NCBI GenBank assembly: GCA_002269645.1
Contig: NIVC01000476.1
Location: 146,985-210,984, forward strand
DNA length: 64,000 nucleotides
From: Macrostomum lignano
Taxonomy: Eukaryota
Direction: 5' to 3'
How positions within the stretch are numbered: position 1 is the first letter of the stretch; every line of letters begins with the position of its first letter. Position numbers and translations under genes: made by a program. Under the pieces are notes generated by a model that saw only the letters and a list, made by a program, of their open reading frames with translations, was not told the origin of the DNA and searched no databases. Positions 5,866-64,000 of the stretch are shown here, in pieces.

Positions 5866-8800
5866 ATGAAGGTGTTCGAATTTTTTGAGTATATTCGCAC
5901 ATTTGGCCTTCTATCGTCGGTCGGGCTGCTTGACTTCGACGATCGGGTCACCTTCCTGCTCAGCGCCATCGTGCTGCTGGTGTGCAGTCTGGTGATCGGC
6001 GCCAAGGAGTACTTCACCAAGTCCATATCCTGCATGCTGCTGCACAAGTTCATCACCCCATTCACCATGATGGACGCGCAGATGATCGAGAGCTACTGCT
6101 GGGTGACCGGAGTTTATCCGCTGCGCATGACCGAGCCGCTGCCGGATGTCAGCGACGAGTGGCTGCTCAAGCATCCAACCATTATTCGTGAGTTGACCGC
6201 CTGGGAGAGGAGGCTGGGGATTGAGTAGAGAAGAGAAGAGGAGAGGAGAAGAGAAGAGAGGAGAGGAGAGGAGAAGAGAGGAAATTAGAGAGGAGAGAAG
6301 ATGAGAGGAGAGGATAGGAGAGGAGAGGAGAGGAGAGGAGAGGAGAGGAGAGGAGAGGAGAGGAGAGGAGAGGAGAGGAGAGGAGAGGAGAGGAGAGGAG
6401 AGGAGAGGAGAGGAGAGGAGAGGAGAGGAGAGGAGATGAGATGAGAGGAGAGGAGAGGAGAGGAGAGGAGAGGAGAGGAGATGAGAGAAGAGCAGAGGAG
6501 AGGAGAGGAGAGGAGAGGAGAGGAGAGTGTTTGGGGACTGACGCGGAGTACTTGCGCTCGGTCGCCGACAGAGTCCTCGACGCGAAAGCAACTGGCTTGC
6601 GAACGCCAGCGCTGTCTTCTTGCATCAACACGGCACCCAGAGCGTGCGCAGAGCTGTCGCAGGCCACGATTATCTTGTCGTCGGGACAGAAGAATCGCAG
6701 GCACGTTGGAGACACTACCATTTTCTTAAGCCTCCAAAAGGCCTTCTGGCAGTCCGCTGTCCAGTTCCAAGGCTGGTCCTTGCGAAGTAGCTGCAGCAGC
6801 GGCTCGGCGATGTCGGATAGGTTGTGTAGGAAGTTCGAGCAAAACTTTACCATTCCGAGAAATGAGGCCACCGCCTCGGTGTTCCGAGGCTCCGGCACCG
6901 CTTCGATGGCTTCCACATTGGACTGCATCGGCTGAAGGCCTCTCGCCGAGACGATGTAGCCCAGAAACTGCATGGACTCTGCAGCCCACTGGCACTTGGC
7001 GGTGTTAAGCGTTCCGCCATGGGCGAGCAGCCGGTCCAGCACTGCCGTGAGCCGCCGCCGGTGCTCCGTCTCGTTGGCAGCATGCACCACGATATCATCA
7101 ATGTAGTGCAGCGTCCCCAAACAGCCGTGGAGAATCTTACTGAGCACCTTCTGAAAGGCTGCTGGAGCGCTGTTAAGGCCGTAGCAGACGCGCTTGTACC
7201 GGTACAGGCCTTTCTCCGTGATGAAGGCCGTTAGGTCCCGCCGGTCTTCCGCCAGTTCCAGTTGCAGGTACGACGAGTTCAAATCGAGCTTAGTGAACAC
7301 GGTCGAGCCCTTGAACTCCGTCGTCAGCTCCTCGAAAGTTGGCAGCAGCTGCTTATCCGGCACTATAGCCTTGTTTGGACACCTGAGGTCGTTGCAGATT
7401 CTGATTTTACCTTCGGGCTTCGGGACGATCACCAGGTTCGAAATCCACTCGGAAGCTTGGATCTCCTCGACGATGTCGTCTGCCAACAGCTGGTCGATCT
7501 CCGCCTGGACCTTGTCCTTAATGCTGAGTGGAATACGGCGGAGCGGCTGCGCTACCGGAGTCACGGCCGGGTTCAGCCTGGGCCGGTGCTCGAATCCTCG
7601 GATCCGCCCGAGCCCCTGCGCCAGAGGCTTGAAGCGCTCGGGAAGCCAGGTCGGCAGCTCTGCTGTTTTATCGACTGTGCGCACCAGGTCGCCGTCCCTG
7701 TCCACCACCTGGAAGTTGAGGTGCTGCATCAAGTCCGCGCCCATGATATCGGAGCCTTGTTGCACCACGGTGAAGCAGAAAAACGGCACCTGCTGGTCTC
7801 GGTAGTTGACGGAAAGCACTGCCTCGCCCACTACACTGATCGCCTCGCCGTTGTACGCGATTAGCTTCTTGGTCGACGACTGCAGTGGCACCCGGTTTCC
7901 GAGCTTTCTGAAGGTCTTTTCCGACAGGATGGACACCTTGGCTCCAGAGTCCACGAGCAGATTCAGCCAGGTGCCTTGCACCTTCAGCCGGCAGCGGATG
8001 TCGGCGCTGGCAGCACCGCGAACTGTGTACACGGCGTGGTCGCTATCGTCCACGACCTCGGCGACCTTGGCTCCCTGCGACCGGCAAACCCGGCCGAAAT
8101 GGTTCGCCCGACCGCAGATGTGGCACATCTTGCCTTCAGCTGGACAGCGAGTTCGGCTGGTGTGTCCGCCTCCGCACTTCGAGCAGCGCTCGCGATCCGC
8201 TGATCGCCTCTGACCTCCGTTTTTCCTGTCAGCTTGCAGTCGGACTCTCTTCACCTCTTCTCCCAGCTGGGCTCCGGAAGCAGCTGCGCCTCCCATCTCG
8301 ATCACGCCGGCCTCGGCGATGCTGGTCTCCCACTGCTGGCTCAGAGTCACGGCCTTCTGCAGGGTCAGACCGTCCTCAATCAGCAGGCGCTTTCGAATTC
8401 GCCTGTCGCTGACCTTCTCCACGATCTGGTCCCGAATCATTTCTTCCATCATGTCGCGGAACTCACATGAGCCAGCTAGAGCATACAGGGCCGCCACAAA
8501 GTCCGCAATCTTTTCACCGGGACGCTGACTGCGCTGCCGAAACTTGTGGCGCTCGGCCACCACGTTGACTTTGACCCCGAACTGCTCGTCCAGAATCGCG
8601 ATTGTCGCAGCGAATCCTGTCGGAGCCGGAGTCCTCGTTGCCGCCACAGCCGTGAAGACTCGCTGGCCTTCAGCGCCCAGGCAGTGCAGCAGCAGCGCAC
8701 GCCTCCTCGCCTCCGGCAGAGTGTCATAACCGGCCGCCAGCAGGTAATTGTCAAACAGAGACTTCCACTCTTTCCACGGCCTCGTCGGTCGGCCTGGCAG

Positions 8801-11800
8801 CGGCAGGAATTGATCTGGCGGCGATACGCTGATCCGCGGCGCTTCTGTTGAGGAATTGTCGCTTGCCATTTTAGTTTGCACTTTTGCAGTTTGGTGCTGT
8901 TGTAGCAACTTGTGTTGGCTTGGCGTGTGTTTTGCAGACACTTCACTCAGACTGACTCCAACCCCGGCTAATTGGGGTGGGTGTTGGTTTTAGCTTGCGA
9001 CGCCAATGTTGTATAATGAATAAGCCAGCCAGTCTGCAAGTTTGTAGGCGAAACTCTCAAGCTCTCAAACTCACCGCGCTCTCACTTATATATCATATAT
9101 TGAAATGCGATCGATAGCTAACAGATGTACAACGAACGTACACACAACTACACACACATTGAGTAGCAACACAACAGAGAGGAGAGGAGAGGAGAGGAGA
9201 GGAGAGGAGAGGAGAGGAGAGGAGAGGAGAGGAGAGGAGAGGAGAGGAGAGGAGAGGAGAGGAGAGGAGATGAGAGGAGAGGAGAGGAGAGGAGAGGAGA
9301 GGAGAGGAGAGGAGAGGAGAGGAGAGAGAGGAGAGGAGAGGAGAGGAGAGCAGATGAGAGGAGAGGAGAGGAGAGGAGAGGAGAGGAGAGGAGAGGAGAG
9401 GAGAGGAGAGCAAAGCAGAGGAGAGCAAAGCAGAGGAGAGCAAAGCAAAGGAGAGCAAAGCAGAGGAGAGCAAAGCAGAGGAGACCAGGGTTCATACCAG
9501 TCTGCACAGAGCGCACTGCTAGACTAGTGATATATGTAAAATCAGGTAAACTAACCCAATAAACAGCCGCCGCACTTCCGACTTCACCAACCGATCCCTC
9601 CGCAGGTTATTACCTGTGGGTGCCGCTGCTACTTGCGCTGCAGGCTCTGCTGTGCTACCTGCCGAAAGCGCTGTTTGATTTGATCTGCTTCAGCCGCTCA
9701 GCCTACTGCTTGAGCTTCATCGCTGTCTCCGCCCGGGAGGCGTCGCTGCTGTCGCCAGCCAGACGGGCGGAGAGAGTCGACGAGCTGGCGACTTGCCTGG
9801 CCGACCTGCTAGTGGCGTCGCGGGAGTACCGGCAAGGCCGGGCGGTCAAGTGGGCCACCGCGGTGCACCGCTGCCTTCCGTGGTGCCCCATCAGCAAGAG
9901 ATTCGGTAATTACACCTTTGTGATGTACCTGGTAACTAAACTGGCGGGCCTGGCTGTCTTGCTGTTGCAGCTGGAGCTGATGAGGCAGTTTCTCGGCTTC
10001 CAGTCTTTGTCGTATGGCGCCGAACTGATGCGAAATATCACTATGGGACTGGACTGGGAGATCACCATGGTGCTTCCCAGGTAAGCACTACTCTATGCCC
10101 AGTGTGTGCGTGTGCATGTGTGTTTGAGTGAGTGAGTTATTGAGTGAGTGAGTGAGTTATTGAGTGAGTGAGTGAGTGAGTGAGTGAGTGAGTGAGTGAG
10201 TGAGTGAGTGAGTGAGTGAGTGAGTGAGTGAGTGAGTGAGTGAGTGAGTGATTGAGTGAGTGAGTGAGTGAGTGAGTGAGTGAGTGAGTGAGTGAGTGAG
10301 TGAGTGAGTGAGTGAGTGAGTGAGTGAGTGAGTGAGTGAGTGGTTGAGTGAGTGAGTGAGTGGGTGAGTGAGTGAGTGAGTGAGTGAGTGAGTGATTGAG
10401 TGAGTGAGTGAGTGAGTGAGTGAGTGAGTGAGTGAGTGAGTGAGTGAGTGAGTGAGTGAGTGAGTGAGTGGTTGAGTGAGTGAGTGAGTGAGTGAGTGAG
10501 TGAGTGAGTGAGTGAGTGAGTGAGTGAGTGAGTGAGTGAGTGAGTGATTGAGTGAGTGAGTGAGTGAGTGAGTGAGTGAGTGAGTGAGTGAGTGAGTGAG
10601 TGAGTGAGTGAGTGAGTGAGTGTGTGTGTGTTTTAGTCTGTGCGCTAGTTGATGTGTGTCTTTGTGCAATGTCTGTTCGAGCTCATATCCCATTTTTACT
10701 GAAAAAATGACCTGCATATACCTGGTGTATTTTCTAATTAAAAAAAGACATTAATTCCAGGCTCGGCGCATGCCGCTTCTCTTTCCCCGACCGAACCAGC
10801 GTGATCAGCATCACTCCCTACTGCACCATCAGCTCCAACATTTTCACCGAGAAGGTGTACATCATCCTGTGGTTCTACTTTGTCCTGGCTGCCATTGTTA
10901 ACTCAGCCAGCATACTGCTCTGGCTTAGAAGATTTCTACTCACCCGAAGCAGGTGCCAGTGTCTCAGATCGCTGATCAGAGGCTGCGGATGCCCCAGAAC
11001 CGATCAAGACGAGGTTCGTTTATGAGTATTTAATTGACTGAGCTCATTATCGCCTGAAGTGTTCGCCGGGTTTTTATTGCCTCCTATCTAGATGTACAAT
11101 TGCACACTCGATGGCAATCACGTGACTCTGCTGGTAAACAATGTACAGTCTCTCTCGTCTTCCTTCAGTACACTATCGGATCACGTGATTTCTCAGCCTA
11201 TGCACATCTCCGCTTTGTGTTCAACTGTACAGGCTGGAACATCACGTGATTTAGTATTGAGTGCGGTCGCACGCTCTTAATGATCACGTGATTATACGTT
11301 TACTGAAGCCTCTCGTCACCCACTTAAAGAATTTAAAGTGTAGACTGTTATATACATACCATCTATATCTTATTAAGTATCACTGCAGTCTTACTACAGT
11401 TTCTAGAGTACAGGATACTTGAGTACATAATATTTAATTTGAGTACAGAAGATTTACATTGAGTACAGATGATTTACATTGAGTACAGAAGATTTACATT
11501 GAGTGCAGATGATTTACATTGAGTACAGATGATTTACATTGAGTACAGATGATTTACATTGAGTATAGATGATTCCCATTGAGTACAGATAATTCCCGTT
11601 GAGTACAGATAATTCCCATTGAGTACAGATGATTCCCATTGAGTACAGAAGATTTACATTGAGTATAGATGATTCCCATTTAGTACAGATGATTCCCATT
11701 GAGTACAGATGATTCCCATTGAGTACAGATGATTCCCATTGAGTACAAATGATTTACATTGAGTACAGAAGATTCCCATCGAGTACAGAAGATTCCCATT

Positions 11801-14807: not shown

Positions 14808-15488
14808 CGACAGACACAATGAGTAAATCTACAGACACAATGAGTAACTCTACAGACACAGTGAGTAAATCTACAGTCACAGTGAGTAAATCTACAGACA
14901 CAGTGAGTAAATCTACAGGCACAATGAGCAAATCTACAGGCACAATGAGCAAATCTACAGGCACAATGAATAAATCTACAGGCACAATGAGCAAATCTAC
15001 AGGCACAATGAGTAAATCTGTAGACACAATGAGTAAATCTACAGGCACAATGAGCAAATCTACAGGCACAATGAGTAAATCTGCAGACACAATGAGTAAA
15101 TCTGCAGACACAATGAGTAAATCTACAGACACAGTGAGTAAATCTACAGACACAGTGAGTAAATCTACAGACACAATGAGTAAATCTACAGTCACAATGA
15201 GCAAATCTACAGTCACAATGAGCAAATCTACAGGCACAATGAGCAAATCTACAGGCACAATGAGTAAATCTACAGACACAATGAGTAAATCTACAGACAC
15301 AATGAGTAAATCTACAGACACAATGAGTAAATCTACAGACACAGTGAGTAAATCTACAGACACAGTGAGTAAATCTACAGGCACAGTGAGTAAATCTACA
15401 GGCACAGTGAGTAAATCTACAGACACAGTGAGTAAATCTACAGGCACAGTGAGTAAATCTACAGGCACAGTGAGTAAATCTACAGACA
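14808..15488. repeat. 21-bp minisatellite (gagtaaatctacagacacaat), probably in a 5' UTR intron of the GT32 gene
   Basis: Tandem units; upstream donor-like ctccag|gtgagc at ~14686. Confidence 0.92.
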
Positions 15489-15580
15489 CATCAAGCCGGT
15501 GCTCCACCAGAATCCGCCACGCCCTCCCCATCCCCCACCGCAGGCGCTCCTGCAGTGACCGCGCGCCCCCCGCCGCCGAC

Positions 15581-17164
15581 ATGCGCCTCTTCCGCTGCCT
15601 GCGCCGCGGCTCGGGCTGCTCTCCTCTGCCCTCAGTGCTGCTGCTGCTGCTGCTGTTGCTATTCGTGTACTCGGTCGGCCGGGGCTGGATCTACTTCACC
15701 TGGGAGGAGCCGGCCTGGCTGCAGCTCACCGGAGACCCCCAAATTGACGCGAGAATCCGCCAGCTGGCCGCAGCAAGCCGGCCTCGCCGACTGAATTTGA
15801 GCAGCCGATGCGACGGCCGGATACCGCTGCTGCTGCACCAGATCTACACCAGCGACAGCGTGCCAGAGCTGTACAGGCACTCCATCGCCTCCTGCATTCG
15901 TCGGCATCCGGACTTTGTCTACGTGCTCTGGACAGATCCTGAGGCGAGAAGATTTGTAGCGGCGAACTACCCGGCCTACCTGGCCATGTTCGACGGATAC
16001 AAGAACACCTTGCAGAGATCCGATGCCCTGCGCTACTTCATTCTGTACCACTTTGGAGGTGACGGCACTTAATTCTAGGGCTGACAGCTTCCTGTACCCA
16101 CAAGGGATTTCCTACAGGGGATTTCCCGCAATGGATTTCCCGCAAGGAGTTTCCCCAGGAGATTTCCCACAAGGAATTTCCCGCAAGGGGTTTCCCGCAA
16201 GGGGTTTCCCGCAAGGGGTTTCCCGCAAGGGGTTTCCCGCAAGGGGTTTCCCGCAAGGGGTTTCCCGCAAGGGGTTTCCCGCAAGGGGTTTCCCGCAAGG
16301 GGTTTCCCGCAAGGGGTTTCCCGCAAGGGGTTTCCCGCAAGGGGTTTCCCGCAAGGGGTTTCCCGCAAGGAGTTTCCCGCAAGGGGTTTCCCGCAAGGGG
16401 TTTCCCGCAAGGGGTTTCCCGCAAGGGGTTTCCCGCAAGGGGTTTCCCGCAAGGGGTTTCCCGCAAGGGGTTTCCCGCAAGGGGTTTCCCGCAAGGGGTT
16501 TCCCGCAAGGGGTTTCCCGCAAGGGGTTTCCCGCAAGGGGTTTCCCGCAAGGGGTTTCCCGCAAGGGGTTTCCCGCAAGGGGTTTCCCGCAAGGGGTTTC
16601 CCGCAAGGGGTTTCCCGCAAGGGGTTTCCCGCAAGGGGTTTCCCGCAAGGGGTTTCCCGCAAGGGGTTTCCCGCAAGGGGTTTCCCGCAAGGGGTTTCCC
16701 GCAAGGGGTTTCCCGCAAGGGGTTTCCCGCAAGGGGTTTCCCGCAAGGGGTTTCCCGCAAGGGGTTTCCAGAAGGGTTTTTTACCAATGGGATTTCCCGC
16801 ATGGTATTTCCCGCATGGTATTTCCCGCATGGTATTTCCCGCATGGTATTTCCCGCATGGTATTTCCCGTAAGGGGTTTCCCACAGGAATCTTGTTCCTC
16901 CAGGATCCTACAGTCAGGGTTTTTAGAGGGGCTGACCCCGCAGGGATTTTCCGCAGGATATTTCCCAATAGGGATTTATCAAAAATATATCCCACAGGGG
17001 ATTTCCATAGGGATTTCCCTCAGGTTATTGTTAGAGATGATTTCTACAGGGATTTTCCATAGAAGACTTTAACTTGGATCTTCCTATAGCAATTTATTTT
17101 GGCAAGAATTTCCTAAGAGTCCATTTTGCTGCGGCACCAATTATTCCTGGAAATCATAAACTCT

Positions 17165-56389: not shown

Positions 56390-56872
56390 TAGATTAGCAA
56401 TCTATTCTATTCCTTTATGAGTGACGTTGGTTAGATTAGCAATCCATTATATTCCTTCATCAGTGATGTTGGCTAGATTAGCAATCCATTCTATTACCTC
56501 ATCAGTGATGTTGGCTAGATTAGCAATCCATTCAAATTCTTCATCAGTAATGTTGGCTAGATTAGCAATCCATTCTATTCCTTCATCAGTGATGTTGGCT
56601 AGATTAGCAATCCATTCTATTCCTTTATGACTGACGTTGGCTAGATTAGCAATCCATTCTATTCCTTTATGAGTGACGTTGGCTAGATTAGCAATCCATT
56701 CTATTCCTTCATCAGTGATGTTGGCTAGATTAGCAATCCATTCGAATTCTTCATCAGTGACGTTGGCTAGATTAGCAATCCATTCTATTCCTTCATCAGT
56801 GATGTTGGCTAGATTAGCAATCCATTCTATTCCTTCAACAGTGATGTTGGCTAGATTAGCAATCCATTCTAT
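56390..56872. repeat. 42-bp minisatellite, copy 2 (same unit and orientation as 49395-49815)
   Basis: Seen directly. Confidence 0.95.
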
Positions 56873-57807
56873 TTACTTAAGTTCACTCAATTATTAAAAA
56901 GAGCATATGCATGATCTGTAAAGATCAAACTCGTACAACCGGCTTTCACCAAACACAGAGAATGGAACAAAAGTTATCCTTACCTATAAAGTGCATTAAC
57001 AAAGAGCAAAGCCAGTAAAAGTAAACTGACAGACGGGGTTGGAGGCGGCGCTGTGCGCTCTCAAGCATGCAGGTTTTTAGCATTCAAGCAAATCAAAATT
57101 CGATAATTAGAGCACAAAGAAAATAATTATAATTTTTTAAACTAAATTGAAAATGCGGTCAAGCCTCGAACTCAAACAAAAAGCACAAAAGTAGTCGAGC
57201 GGCAGAATTAGCGCAAAGCTCTGAACAAAAAACGGTACAAATAATAAATTTTGAAACCCAGGTAAATTCGGCACAAGACACAAAGTAGAACGGGACGGTT
57301 GTGTTGAAATTCTTGGAAAATGAAAGAAATGAAAGAATGCAGAAGAGCTTCAAAACGCAATGAGCTCCAAGCAATAACCAACCGTCCCGTCCATTGATTT
57401 GCGGTGCCTACCTGAATTTACTGAGGCAAATAAAACACACTAATCAACTGGATTTAAAAAAAATAATACAACTTCGTTACAAACAAAACAATTTGAGAAC
57501 AGTTGCGAGTTGGCCGAAAAGCAAAACCTGGCAAAAAAATTTACTGTTTTCTGTTGGTTATGGAAGCAATTTAAAAGCTGCCGATATCTCTGTGAGTGAC
57601 GAATAGTCTTAGTCACGCTTTGGATCAGCTTCAGGTTCGATAGACAGACGAGGACAGATGGGGTAATCGAGACGTTAAGGCATAGTAAATTGTTGCGTTG
57701 TTAGAGCGCATTCCCTCTGATATATCACCAATAGATGGAAGGGACAAGACAGTCTATGGCCTTAGCTGGCTCATTTGTGCCAGTACTTGCACCAAATAAC
57801 TGATAAA

Positions 57808-58000
57808 GGGCCGTATGCAGAAAGCTCTGTCTAGGGTAGTCCGGTCTTGAAAAGCTAGTCTGGACTTGGATTTGGTATGCAGAAACACAAAGTTAGACCG
57901 GTCTACTATAGCAGAACTAGGGTAGCTGGACCATAGACTATAGACTTAACTACCCAAGTCCGGACTAGCTAGTCTGGACTAAGCTTTCTGCATACGGCCC
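57808..58000. mobile_element. 193-bp MITE
   Basis: 19-bp perfect TIR GGGCCGTATGCAGAAAGCT...AGCTTTCTGCATACGGCCC, with internal tagtccgg/ccggacta symmetry; no clear TSD. Confidence 0.75.
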
Positions 58001-58367
58001 ATTGCTTCCCTGCAGCCACAGCCACTCGGGCCATAGACAATAAAGCCAGTCTCGCAATTCCAAGCTGCTTTCTACCACAGACGACAAGTGAAGGCTCTGC
58101 TCTCTGGTTGAAAAAGACAATCAAGTAGGAAATTTCCAAGCAAGCATTCTTGATTCTCAATGGAATTATCCGCTTGATTGAGCATCTCCTGTTGTCTGAT
58201 CTTCGCTGTATTGTTGGCTCGTAAGTGACGTTATTTAACGTTATTTTCAACGGCAATAATTATTGAACTGAATGCAAAGTATGCTGTGTCGGTTTAGTTT
58301 TTCTAAGACAGCAGTTTCATGTCCCCTTCATCTATTTGGCAATATATCACAGAAGTTCCTCGCTTTA

Positions 58368-61300
58368 TTAAAAGGAATTCTTTACAAAAGATAGAAACTC
58401 TGGCTTAGTAAGCAGAGTCCAATAAGCCTTGGGAGTTTCTGGGGCAGCGGCGGGGGCGGCGTCGGAGGCTTCGCCGTTCGCGCTGGCCTCGGCGGCTGAA
58501 GAGTCCGACGGTTGATCAGCTTGTTGGCTTGTCCGGCGCCGCTTGGCCAGAAAGAAGTTGAATTTATTGAAAACATCGGCCGCAACAGCCGTCTCCTCGG
58601 CGTCCCACAGGCGGAGCGACTCCTCCATTGTGAGACGTCGCTTTAGAGAGGGCGGCGCGGCGGCAGGATAGGCGAAGTCGGGCTGGTAATCGGCGATAGG
58701 CTCCGCAGGACAGTCAGGTTTTTTCTGCTCTTTGCGCGCTCTATGGCGACGCTCACGGCTTCGGCTGCGCTTGCGATTGCTGCTTCGGCTGCGACTATTG
58801 CTGCGTCTTCTATCACTGGTGCTGCTTTTGCGACGGCTTCTGCTGTCGCTGCTTTTTCTATGGCCGCTGCTGATTTTACGATTACTGCTGCTACTGCTAT
58901 TGCTGCTGCTGCTACTGATCCGACGACTACGACTGCTTCTTCTATAGTGGCTGTCGTTTCTGCGATAGTTGCTGCCTCGGTCGCTGCTGCGATACCTGTC
59001 CTGACTGCGGCTCGGCCTGCGCGATTCAAACAGGTTGAATTGTACTAAAATTCACTGCCTCTATGATGCATGCAAATGCGAAATACAAAATGCGATTACA
59101 GACTTACCTGTCGCTAGCAGCAGCCCTACTGCCGCTATTATGGCTGCTGATACCAGGAATGACTGCAGGCACCGGTTTCCCAGATTTATTCTGAGCGGCA
59201 GGTACTGGTGAACCGGATTTCGATGTGACAGGCACCGGTGTTTCTGTAGATGCTGCGATCAGCGAGTCTGAAACCTGTGGATCTGGAACAGGTGCAGCTG
59301 ATACCTGTGGATCTGGCACAGGTCCAGCTGATACCTGTGGATCTGGAACAGGTGCAGCTGATACCTGTGGATCTAGAACAGGTACAGCCGATACCTGTGG
59401 ATCTAGAACAGGTACAGCTGATTCCTGTGGATCTAGCACAGGTACAGCCGATACAGCCGATACCTGTGGATCTGGTGGCACAGGTGTGGCAGAATCCCGT
59501 AGCAATGACACAGGCGTGGCAAACACCGATGAAGCAGACTCAGGTGCGGCGGACACCAGTGGAGTAGACACAGGTGGAGCAGACACAGGTGCGGCAGACC
59601 CCTGTGGAGCAGACACAGGTGCGGCAGACCCCTGTGGAGCAGACACAGGTGCGGCAGACCCCCGTGGAGCAGACACAGGTGCGGCAGAAACGGGTTTAGC
59701 GCCCGACCTGGCCGCCGCCAAGCGCACCCTGGGATCCCGACTCTCCAGCTGCTTGGCCTGCTCCTGGGCGGCCTTAGCGGCGGCCTCAATACGCTGCTTG
59801 CCGATAGCCTCGGCCGCCTGTTTCATCCGGTCGGCCAGGCCGCTGAAACAGTCCTGCAGATTGTAGCATCGAACGGTTGAACGGCAGACTGGCGCCCACT
59901 GCGCGCCCGGGTCGGTCGAGCCTTGGCAGAGCAACTGGCGCCGGGGAATGGGCAGCCAGATCAGCACGTGAATCAGATTCTTCGTGCGGCCCAGCATGCG
60001 GGTAGCGCTGTCTAGTTGAAGCCGCTTAGATAGCGCCGACTGCGACGGCACCAAATAGCAGAGCGCGCCGGCGCCGTCAGCCGATTCGGTCATGGGCGCC
60101 AGCAGCAGGCAGTCCTTGGTGATCAGCATCTCGCAGAGTGTCCGGGCCCGGGCGGCGTTAGACGGGTCGAACAGTCCGGCCAGGTAGCTGACGTAGCCGG
60201 CGCTGGAGTCGGCCAGGCGGCAGACGGGCTTCTCCTCGGTCAGGGAGACGCCACAGTTGGCCAGGCGGGCCTCCAGATCGGCCGAGTCGACAACGCGGCA
60301 GGGGGTGGCCGACGGCAGCGAGCCGAGCTGCAGAAATGGCAGCACGGAGGGCGTTTTCTCAAGCGAGACCAGGCCGAGCTTCAGGCTGGGTCCCGCTGGC
60401 AGCAGGGGCAGCAGGACTTCGCCAACAAGGTAGGCGCCGTCGTTGAATTTCTTCACCCAATCTTGCCGATCGGGGCACACGGGCCGCGGCCGTCGTTGAC
60501 TTCGGCTACGAATCGGGCTCGACTCAGTGGAAGATTCGGCGGAGGAGGACACGGCTTCAGCTGATGCTGCAGAGCACTTTGCATTTTCCTGCTGCTTCTG
60601 CTCAGGTTTAGGCGCATGCTCCAGCGTCTCAGCTTCATCCTTCTGATCCTGCTGCATTTGTTGTTGAACCTGCTGCGCCTGCGTCTCCTGTTGTTGTTGC
60701 TTTGGCTGCTTGCGGTCGAGTGTCGGCTGGGTCTTCCGCTTGAAGCACTGGTCCCTGATCTGGTGCACGGGATTTGGGATAAACTATTCGATGTCTCAGA
60801 ATATGCTTTGTATGCGAAGGTTGCCTATTCTAATCAGTAATCTACTAGTAATCTATCCGTAAATCTATTAAAAGCGATGCAAAAAATTAACTTATTAAAG
60901 ATACCTAGTTCTCAATAAATGACAGATGCTCAAGATGCAAATTAATAAACACAAATATCGTAAGCAGAGAAAAGTTTCCTACAGGGCGTGCGCTGAGCTC
61001 GAACTCAAGCATCACAGCTTCACTGTTGATGACGAATGGCCTAGATTCAAGAGGCAAGTCTGCGTTTGCTGGTGAGCAAATTAGGGAGCAGGAAATGTCC
61101 CATAAACGCGACACTGGAAAGGTCTCAACAGGGAGACTCTATTAGTGGACAGCTTCAGAGCCTGGTTCAAATTCCAGGCCAAAATGCTTACCAAGCCATC
61201 GAACTTGAATTGAACAGCAGCCACAGGCAGCACGTGCCTGGGATGGTCCATCAATTCCAGGTCGGGTCCGTACTCAAATAGGAACACCTGGCTGCTATGA

Positions 61301-62442
61301 AATCCGGCTTCAATTATGCTTGCAGCTTTTCTATTAATCAATTCATCGTCTGTAAGCGTCTGACGAACGCTCTCGTGACAGTCGTACATTGGCTGTGGCT
61401 CCACAACGCTGTCGCCCTCGGTCCAGTAGCAGACGCGGCCGCGAACGTAGCGACAGATGACCAGCCAGCCAGTCTTTGGCAGGCCGAACTTCGGTGAGAT
61501 CCGATCGACGTACCGGCCCAGGGAGACGCCGGTAGAGCCGATGGCCAGAGTAGAGTCTGGCAGGTTGCCGCGGCGGATGCCGTTCTCAGCAATGCCGCGC
61601 AATCGATCCATTACGTCCGGCACGGGCGCCAGGTAGACGAAACCGTACCGCTCATCCAGCTTGACGGAGCCAGCCAGGGCGGCCAGATTGCTGGCGTTTT
61701 CTTCGGCAATGGCGGCCTGGATCTCCGCCTTCTTGGTGGCGAACTGTGACAACAGAATTACTCAATTTGGTTATTTTTGTGCACTAGAATTCGATATAGT
61801 ACTACTAGTAGCAGCAACCAGCTAAGCGCATTTCTATAAACTGCTTATTTTTACCTTATCACCGAGGCTCTTGTTGCCGATAGCAAATACTTTTGACGGG
61901 GAAAATTTGCTTCTTAATTCCTTATTTAAGAAGCCGCGCGATATGATGCAGTTAATGTCGTGCTTGTACTCGTTGGAATTTAGGTCAACGCTGCGCAGAA
62001 ATTCTGCAAATAGAAAGAAGAAAGGTAAGTAGTCTACAGCCTGAAAAAGCTATTTACTAAGGCTAAATTGGTTATTAGCTTAGTCACCCTTGGAGCTATG
62101 CGCCACTTTGGGCACCCGGATCTGTTTCAAAGCCTCTGTGCCAACGTAGCGCTCGTTAACAACATTTGGATGAAACCTGCCGGCCGAACCCGAAGCCATG
62201 GAATCGGCTGTCTGATTGAGGCCTCCAGACGCAGCGGCGGTGGTGACCTTTTTCTTCTTCTTTTTAATTGGAGAAGCCGAGCCAATATTATTATTGTTGC
62301 TGCAGTTGGCAATGTTATTATTGTCTTTTGGCCCGGAGCTTCTCTCCGACAGCGATAATGAAGGCGTTTGACAGTGCCTCAACGCCTGGAATTGCGAGTT
62401 TGAACAGCGAGGTTTAAACGGCGGCATTAAGGGTGAATTCAT
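58368..62442 (-). CDS. TASOR/TEX15-family protein: DUF3715 pseudo-PARP domain, SPOC-like domain and RS-rich C-terminus; exons 62442-62088, 62003-61855, 61743-61192, (linker unresolved), ~60783-59108, 59016-58368
   Basis: DUF3715 motifs seen: GVSLGRYVD, VEPQPMYDCHES, SQVFLFEYG...PRHVLPVAAVQF. These recall human TASOR motifs as remembered (GVYLSRYAD, LDPTPKHECHVS, YFYEYG...PRHVCPYAVVSF). Phase-consistent upstream exons (IRVPK, ISRGFL...NKSLGDKFATKKAEI); SPOC-like segment LCEMLITKDCLLL...LCYLVP...IHVLIWLP. Confidence 0.8.
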
Positions 62443-64000
62443 TACTCCAATAACCTACACAGATTATCTTGCATCCTGAAATATATTATAACCTAGAAAA
62501 AGATTAGAAAAAATTCGCGAGCAAGACAAAACGAAATAATCAATAAATCAATAATTTATGTTGTCTGACAAACACTAAAACACTTACACCGAATAGAACA
62601 ATACAGCAAGCAAAGATTAAGCAAAGATGACTTAAACTAAAAAAAAATTTTTAAGCTAATCACAAGCTTAGGGATAACTTTTCCTTTTTACATTGCATTG
62701 AGTAAGCCACCTGAGTAAAGAATGATTCACAGTAAGAATCAATCCATAAAAAGTAGTAGACTTGTTGATTTATCAATAAGAATGTCAAGAAGCTGCATTG
62801 CAGTCAGTCTCACACTCTCGTATTATCAAATTCAAATGCTCTTAAACTCAAGAGCATCCGGATACGCGATAGAAAGTGGAGGTAGCGCGCGGTTTAAGGC
62901 AAAAACAGAGTTGAATTAAATATTTTCACAATAGCAGTAGTACGGATAAGACGAACAACAATTGACTTGTTCTTTCTTCAGGATGTCCCATGTGCACTTA
63001 AAGCGCGTTTTCCAGTCGTATAGTTGCGGCTTCAATTGAAATAGTGGCCCGTTCGAATAGACAAAATTGCAAGCAGTCAGAATTGATACAAGCAAAATTT
63101 AATTCGGATTTAGTCAAATTAGATTTTGCAGTTCAAAGTTATGAAGCTAAATATAAAGTATAGCAACGAATAACAAACTCGCAGAAAATAGTGAACTCTT
63201 ACGTGCTATTACCGACACCAAATTGGAAAACAGCCGCTAATGTTCAAATGATTCGGGTCTCTAGGTGAATCAGAATGCGGGTTGTTTAACTATGGGGGAG
63301 AATGAGGGGTTTCGGTACAGGGGGGGGGGGGGAAGGACCCCAAAGCACGAATCAACTATATGGAGGTGAGTGGTATACGAGCAAGCAATGCACATTTGTC
63401 ATGATCCTTCAACCAACCATAATTCGACAAGCATGTAGTGTCCTGTCTAGACTCCATTGTTAGGACAGACTATGCCAAAATCGCTTCTTTTAACTTCTAC
63501 CAGACCAGAATTTTATATACAAAAAAGCCCGGTGGGGAAAGAACGGAAATAGTGATGACTCAATCTTTCTCTGGACAGATGCGTATAGGGTATAAAATAA
63601 GCCCGAACGCAGACCCTACGGTCCCTTGGCACTGATAAGGGTGGATAACCCACGGTTCCAAGGATATAGACTACCTCGAGGATTGAGGGTAAAGAAGGTC
63701 CTGTGGGCCTGCCCCAATTTTATCTTCTTAAATTCCTAGCTGTTCCTTTTCTATTCACGTCAAGTTAAAAACAGACATCAAAGGGGAAATCCTACAAAAC
63801 ATAGATAGGCTTAGGCCATAGACAACGCTCAAATTACTGAAACTCGACGAGAAACAAGCAAACCTGACATTAGACACAAAAGCATTTTGCAGTGCACGCG
63901 CTGCAGCCGAATACTGCGCACTTTATGGCTTTGAAAGTGCACGCATGATGAGCGTATCTTATCAATAAGCTTACTGACAGAACTGTGTGCAGAAACTGAC

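Follow-up and report, generated by a model that had tools for sequence, protein, structure and literature searches.

TASOR (FAM208A), the scaffold of the vertebrate HUSH complex, which silences transposons, is a relative of the gene product reported here; it is understood, like HUSH as a whole, almost entirely from mammalian cells. The vertebrate protein begins with a DUF3715 domain, a PARP fold with a degenerate nicotinamide adenine dinucleotide (NAD) site and hence called a pseudo-PARP, and continues with a SPOC-like domain and long disordered regions. In human TASOR, DomI is the MPP8-binding module and segment 1014–1095 binds Periphilin. DUF3715 arose early, and TASOR-like proteins with the order DUF3715-SPOC-DomI occur throughout Metazoa, invertebrates included; TEX15, a vertebrate factor of the PIWI-interacting RNA (piRNA) pathway, has the same DUF3715 pseudo-PARP fold and is reported to be vertebrate-specific, and the DUF3715 domains of TEX15 or of distant family members can replace that of TASOR in transposon silencing (Schöpp 2023, PMC10578480). 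Here we describe a TASOR-like gene of the flatworm Macrostomum lignano, on the minus strand of a 64,000-nt stretch of contig NIVC01000476.1 (assembly GCA_002269645.1, positions 146,985 to 210,984). This whole stretch is called the window, and all coordinates below are window positions.

The flatworm product resembles vertebrate TASOR in its N-terminal DUF3715 domain (E=3e-8), its degenerate NAD site, an aromatic residue at the position of human Y305, a probable SPOC-like domain that comes next, and long disordered regions downstream. It differs in its length (~1,120 against ~1,670 amino acids, aa), in a Gln-rich linker of ~100 aa between the pseudo-PARP and SPOC-like domains, and in a SPOC-like domain too divergent for Pfam. 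DomI, the Periphilin-binding segment and DomII/PIN are undetectable in it, while its decapeptide repeats and Arg/Ser-rich (RS) tail are not described features of TASOR; human TASOR also keeps the last NAD-contact tyrosine (Y217), whereas the flatworm protein has lost the equivalent residue. We put the probability at roughly 0.6 that the gene is the M. lignano TASOR-type member of the pseudo-PARP family and that its product is a nuclear, non-enzymatic scaffold in RNA-linked transposon repression. Homology, together with the conservation of Y326, the equivalent of human Y305, makes such a scaffold role the most likely function.

Gene model and pseudo-PARP domain

The coding sequence runs from an ATG at 62442 to a TAA at 58370–58368, exactly the interval that an earlier note on this DNA had delimited; the note's setting, a repeat-rich invertebrate genome, was also correct. 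The features of the gene are as follows, all on the minus strand.

61192..62130, minus strand: full family-aligned pseudo-PARP domain, aa ~105–352, broken by introns 1 and 2 (alignment with 13 relatives)
59926..60483, minus strand: probable SPOC-like domain, aa ~453–638 (hhalign against three SPOC-like profiles; MAFFT register)
59263..59700, minus strand: two arrays of in-frame 30-nt (10-aa) tandem repeats, PVSAPQGSAA about five times and PVPDPQVSAA about six times (TRF)
62088..62442, minus strand: coding exon 1 (open reading frame and splice model; donor G/GTGACT; N-terminus identical in UniProt model P0001)
61855..62003, minus strand: coding exon 2, N-terminal part of the pseudo-PARP (acceptor TTTGCAG/, donor AAG/GTAAAA; junctions agree with P0001 and P0002)
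61192..61743, minus strand: coding exon 3, pseudo-PARP (DUF3715) core (PF12509 and 6TL1 matches)
59108..60783, minus strand: coding exon 4 (open frame of 554–559 codons; acceptors ...AATAG/ at 60783 and ...CACCAG/ at 60759)
58368..59016, minus strand: coding exon 5 (91-nt intron AG/GTAAGT...GCGCAG/G; C-terminus as in P0001 and P0002)
58364..58369, minus strand: polyadenylation-type hexamer AATAAA, which shares bases with the stop codon in TTT TAA TAA AGC (read from the sequence)

The five exons give an open reading frame (ORF) of 1,126 codons that stays open throughout in the window. The four introns, of 84, 111, 408 (or 432) and 91 nt, all read GT-AG in the sequence; the 432-nt variant of intron 3 arises from the alternative in-frame acceptor of exon 4 at 60759, which costs 8 aa and is the one taken by the database models P0001 and P0003. 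Exon 1 encodes a Ser/Asn-rich N-terminus, followed by a KKKKKK run that resembles a nuclear localization signal (62265–62248), and contains the start of the family-conserved N-terminal motif IRVPK...LRSVDLNSNEYKHDI. The pseudo-PARP coding sequence is spread over exons 1–3; exon 4 continues with the Gln-rich linker and the SPOC-like domain, and also encodes a short Ala/Gln/Lys-rich helix and the decapeptide repeats. The hexamer at the stop codon presumably serves as the polyadenylation signal.

The DUF3715 family PF12509 is matched at aa 215–341 with E=3.6e-8 and 34.0 bits, above its gathering cut-off of 28.5 bits, when residues 88–371 alone are searched against Pfam; the full-length product finds nothing relevant in Pfam, probably owing to the biased composition of much the greater part of the protein. 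Searching the PDB by sequence brings up 6TL1, the crystal structure of the pseudo-PARP of human TASOR, at aa 214–349 (E=3.1e-8). The spliced DUF3715 that the earlier note had reported is thus borne out. An alignment of the domain with 13 relatives has invariant G, D, P, H and Q columns, and a profile built from these 14 sequences matches 6TL1 over its whole length (E=3.7e-80). The sole PARP-type structure that this profile reaches in the PDB is the inactive ZAP/PARP13 (E=0.7); active PARPs are absent from its matches, and the Pfam PARP catalytic family is not matched at E up to 10. The grouping with catalytically active PARPs that, according to the note, would refute its reading is therefore not seen.

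The residues of the NAD site were mapped in the numbering of the 6TL1 construct, which comprises residues 110–332 with 261–269 deleted (PMC7532188). V204 aligns with human L184, the position of the PARP catalytic histidine, which is hydrophobic across the family. S242 (codon 61524–61522) occupies the position of human Y217, the sole NAD-contact residue retained by human TASOR, and F316 (codon 61302–61300) that of Y295, which plugs the nicotinamide cleft in the human protein (PMC7532188). Y326 (codon 61272–61270) falls on human Y305, a residue of the extended beta8–beta9 loop that is essential for HUSH-dependent histone H3 lysine 9 trimethylation (H3K9me3) and silencing (PMC7532188); this column is Y or F in 14/14 aligned family members. 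Judged by these positions (His to Val, Y217 to Ser), the domain is a non-catalytic PARP fold with a degenerate NAD+ site.

Relatives and database models

An exhaustive phmmer search over 1.84 billion representatives, with E up to 1e-3, yielded 67 relatives, nearly all of which match the pseudo-PARP only. Vertebrates are represented by Polypterus TASOR and a hagfish “TASOR pseudo-PARP domain-containing protein”, and invertebrates by proteins of Saccoglossus, Branchiostoma, the annelid Dimorphilus, Mytilus, Lottia, Solemya, echinoderms and a nemertean; parasitic flatworms contribute “TASOR pseudo-PARP domain-containing proteins” from Schistosoma mekongi, Fasciola hepatica and Calicophoron daubneyi. 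Outside the flatworms, the best matches (E=1e-16 to 1e-13) are the TASOR-like proteins of Saccoglossus, Branchiostoma, Dimorphilus and Mytilus, which agree with the window protein in domain order and have the N-terminal motif F-x-IPK...S-x-EY in common with it, although many such invertebrate proteins are far longer (2,600–3,900 aa).

In a neighbour-joining tree of the pseudo-PARP domains, which has long branches and was built without bootstrap, the window protein, its paralogue and three unnamed short sequences form the sister group of the trematode proteins, and this flatworm group is separate from the vertebrate clades of TASOR and TASOR2 type. The grouping fits vertical descent within flatworms. 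The trematode proteins belong to the same phylum and likewise have a long insert between DUF3715 and the SPOC-like segment; they differ in that identity within the pseudo-PARP is only ~25–30%, their SPOC-like profile does not significantly match the second domain of the window protein, and their C-terminal halves are different.

The proteins of S. mekongi, C. daubneyi and F. hepatica are TASOR-type chains of 1,460–1,710 aa with a SPOC-like segment, present despite the loss of the Piwi pathway that is stated for parasitic flatworms (PMC8191739). No functional work on them was found in the searched literature.

The closest database proteins are all from M. lignano: A0A1I8H9D3, which is 99% identical and named “DUF3715 domain-containing protein” in UniProt, the paralogue A0A1I8H023, which is 91–93% identical and keeps the same domains, and the NCBI model BOX15_Mlig000723g14. 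The database models agree with exons 1–3 and are truncated, frameshifted or oddly spliced downstream. The same locus is also present on contig NIVC01004496.1 of GCA_002269645.1, where it is 99.5% identical to the window and differs from it within the gene by four 1-nt indels (61539, 59214, 58865 and 58771) and one 3-nt indel (59999–59997); the 1-nt coding indels of that contig account for the truncated and frameshifted models, such as P0003, which starts MYDCHES. The flanking DNA has many more indels between the two contigs. Among the differences is a run of ~13 G at ~63310–63330, whose length differs by 2 nt, probably owing to homopolymer sequencing uncertainty.

The second domain and the C-terminal half

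The region at aa ~453–638 is probably a divergent SPOC-like beta-barrel, a position suggested by the family and by profile comparisons. A local jackhmmer search places a SPOC-like domain directly after the pseudo-PARP in ~45 DUF3715 relatives; Pfam SPOC is above its cut-off in the Dimorphilus protein and weak in that of Saccoglossus, and the family profile touches the FPA SPOC structure 5KXF (E=0.03). Whereas the SPOC-like domains of the invertebrate TASOR-like proteins are recruited by iteration of hidden Markov models, that of the window protein emerges at the profile-profile level only. Compared in hhalign with three SPOC-like profiles, an alignment of the M. lignano domain scores 26.6–29.9 (P=6e-4 to 4e-3), a range reached by 0/60 column-shuffled controls, whose maxima are 17.7–21.2. 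Reversed sequences score 12–13.5, unrelated real domains against the SPOC-like profiles 8.9–16.5, and the M. lignano domain against pseudo-PARP or DomI profiles 12.6–12.9. All three comparisons align the identical core, and MAFFT independently gives the same register; the best-conserved part reads YVSYL...LCEML...CLLLAP...LCYLVPS...LSKRLQL...IHVLIWLP (60195–59944).

Several results weigh against this assignment and, with it, against a TASOR-type reading of the gene. By sequence search aa ~453–638 match nothing in Pfam or the PDB, and have no detectable relative outside M. lignano; the formal HH probability of the SPOC-like match is low (8–28%). AlphaFold models of aa 88–700 from a single sequence (pLDDT, the predicted local distance difference test, 34) and of the second domain from a 4-sequence alignment (pLDDT 38) are unusable, and the assignment is accordingly graded as probable and not proven. 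The SPOC-like domain claimed in the earlier note is consequently retained as probable on the profile-profile scores, while no Pfam or PDB sequence search sees a SPOC domain there.

A trematode-only SPOC-like profile, used as a bridge, scored 16.6 against a shuffle maximum of 19.6, which is not significant. Foldseek with the pLDDT-38 model gave no significant match, the top entry being the SPOC domain of RBM15, followed mostly by Ku70/80; the Ku barrel is a known structural relative of SPOC, and the result counts as no more than a hint. A PIAS2 match at E=0.33, met in the PDB and Pfam sequence searches of the second domain and the C-terminal 223 aa, is judged to be noise.

The only relative of the second domain in the exhaustive search is A0A1I8I998 (P0007), a 258-aa M. 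lignano fragment that is only 38% identical to it, and two further word-indexed homologue searches returned M. lignano proteins only. The fragment suggests a second, far more divergent TASOR-like gene lineage in the species; it has no locus on record, and a search of the window for a second copy found none there.

Some 60 ordered residues follow the SPOC-like core, and the Ala/Gln/Lys-rich helix is succeeded by the repeats, the RS tail and the C-terminus. TRF detects the decapeptide arrays with period 30 at 59268–59454 and 59534–59688; the repeat region is 20% P, 18% A, 17% S and 16% V, and is predicted to be a disordered spacer rich in these residues. The RS tail comprises ~100 residues (aa 911–1006, ending near 58731; 34% S, 29% R) and has three R-Y-R-type tyrosines at its start. 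The C-terminal region that follows, RRLTMEESLRLWDAEE...KNSF (58640–58371), is found only in M. lignano copies.

HUSH requires the Ser/Arg/Tyr-rich disordered N-terminus of Periphilin (PMC7544229), and the RS tail resembles that segment in composition only. The idea that the RS tail and C-terminus are a fused Periphilin was rejected, as it finds no sequence support, and survives only in the long-shot reading given below; RS-rich stretches also occur in the family members P0059 and P0027.

Function, alternatives and setting

If the protein is a TASOR-type scaffold, it would be nuclear, as the KKKKKK run and the RS tail suggest, and would act without enzymatic activity in co-transcriptional, RNA-linked transposon repression. 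The pseudo-PARP/SPOC-like head may serve for assembly or as the effector, and contact with RNA-processing factors or nascent RNA may fall to the long disordered tail, made of the decapeptide repeats and the Arg/Ser-rich region. It is plausible that the protein has a HUSH-like function. It should nevertheless be called TASOR-like and not a HUSH subunit, since none of the modules that bind partners in vertebrates (DomI, the helix for Periphilin and DomII/PIN) is detectable in it; nor is it TEX15-like. The TASOR-like half of the earlier note's label holds, DUF3715 followed by a probable SPOC-like domain being the N-terminal architecture that defines the term (PMC10578480).

The undetected modules count against a scaffold of the HUSH kind. 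The vertebrate DomI profile scores 11.1, within the shuffle range, but this comparison has little power, as the invertebrate TASOR-like proteins used as positive controls fail as well. For DomII/PIN there is no Pfam or PDB match, and past aa ~700 the protein consists only of repeats, RS tail and species-restricted C-terminus; the C-terminal 223 aa match no PDB chain at E up to 10. The long isoform is itself a prediction, the repeat and RS parts being skipped in database gene models, and the searched literature yielded neither functional nor expression data on the gene or on a homologue from any flatworm. Drosophila and Caenorhabditis are said to have no orthologues of MPP8 and MORC2 (PMC9635835), so that a HUSH complex cannot be taken for granted beyond the vertebrates.

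No Periphilin-binding segment (human 1014–1095) was seen among the PDB matches, the presence of TASOR-Periphilin chains in the searched PDB copy being unconfirmed. Sequence searches also tend to miss short coiled-coil segments. In the searched literature no paper connects TASOR, FAM208A or DUF3715 with flatworms, and the names FAM208A, TASOR and DUF3715 are absent from the M. lignano expression supplements.

The alternative that survives best, although it is clearly the less likely one, is that a true family member has been repurposed as a nuclear SR-related, RNA-processing or other chromatin scaffold with no part in transposon silencing or a HUSH-like complex. Tails rich in Arg and Ser are characteristic of SR-related proteins of splicing or RNA processing, and the undetected DomI, DomII/PIN and Periphilin-binding segment, the very divergent second domain and the long tree branches are all in keeping with such a change. 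The protein has, however, kept at Y326 the aromatic residue on which silencing by human TASOR depends and has preserved the order of DUF3715 and SPOC-like domain, and DUF3715 domains whose lineages parted early in metazoan evolution are interchangeable in silencing (PMC10578480).

A TEX15-like, piRNA-specific factor downstream of nuclear PIWI in neoblasts and germline is quite improbable. PIWI proteins and piRNAs do silence M. lignano transposons (PMC4604429), and DUF3715 is common to TEX15 (PMC10578480). The TEX15 domains of TEX15, which has no SPOC-like domain, are nonetheless not matched in Pfam at E up to 10, TEX15 is reported to be vertebrate-specific (PMC10578480), the SPOC-like domain after DUF3715 is the TASOR-type arrangement, and parasitic flatworms still keep the family, although they are stated to be without the Piwi pathway (PMC8191739). 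The TEX15 half of the earlier label, with its piRNA-linked reading, is thus unsupported.

There is very little to recommend a decaying or mis-assembled copy, even in a recently duplicated, repeat-rich genome with truncated or frameshifted database models of the locus: 1,126 codons are open across all exons with canonical splice sites, the broken models trace to the 1-nt indels in NIVC01004496.1, and the 91–93% identical paralogue keeps the same domains. A catalytically active PARP (ADP-ribosyltransferase) is scarcely credible, for although the PARP fold is supported by homology to 6TL1, Pfam PARP is not matched, the PDB profile finds TASOR and, weakly, inactive ZAP, and Val and Ser replace the catalytic His and Tyr217.

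A bolder extension of the TASOR-like scaffold reading, which we regard as a long shot, is that flatworms use a compact, single-chain HUSH logic, in which the head carries in cis a disordered, Arg/Ser(/Tyr)-rich tail that would do Periphilin's job, namely nascent-RNA engagement and self-association; the persistence of the family in the PIWI-less parasites would in that case point to their main RNA-directed route of transposon silencing. A more distant parallel is fission-yeast Chp1 of RITS, compared with TASOR by Douse et al. (PMC7532188), which also has a SPOC domain in an RNA-directed heterochromatin scaffold; unlike TASOR-type proteins it has a chromodomain and DomII/PIN and no pseudo-PARP, and the likeness is by description, with no sequence relationship seen.

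The surroundings of the gene contain several other elements. The pol region of a long terminal repeat (LTR) retrotransposon, in keeping with the repeat-rich setting, lies at 6182–8941 (minus strand) as an ORF of 919 aa, which combines reverse transcriptase, RNase H and a retroviral-type aspartyl protease with a gag-like/PNMA region. A ~200-bp element resembling a miniature inverted-repeat transposable element (57805–58003) is found 365 bp past the stop codon of the gene; its 35-nt terminal inverted repeats are 83% complementary, and the inner 19 nt, perfect in their pairing, occur within the window only in those two arms. Further downstream, an intergenic tandem array at 56390–56873 has 11.5 copies of a 42-nt unit, 92% matching. 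The 417-aa ORF at 14819–16072 (plus strand) probably represents an exon of an adjacent gene; its C-terminal end matches the glycosyltransferase DXD sugar-binding region (PF04488, E=1.4e-10).

A TASOR-like gene in an invertebrate is not in itself new, as such genes have been reported across Metazoa (Schöpp 2023, PMC10578480). The earlier note's implication of novelty, that these factors are studied mainly in vertebrates, has to be softened, given that description in 2023 and the automatic DUF3715 label that the protein already carries in UniProt; the present gene is a divergent, compact addition. The gain is modest and consists of a corrected full-length gene model, an unannotated probable SPOC-like domain and an explanation, by indels, of the truncated entries. 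M. lignano is a laboratory flatworm in which transgenesis is described as feasible (PMC5173321) and PIWI-dependent transposon silencing is tied to stem-cell maintenance (PMC4604429). Its short TASOR-like gene would offer a tractable test of the part played by the pseudo-PARP/SPOC-like core in a protein whose counterparts of the vertebrate partner-binding modules are either absent or beyond recognition.

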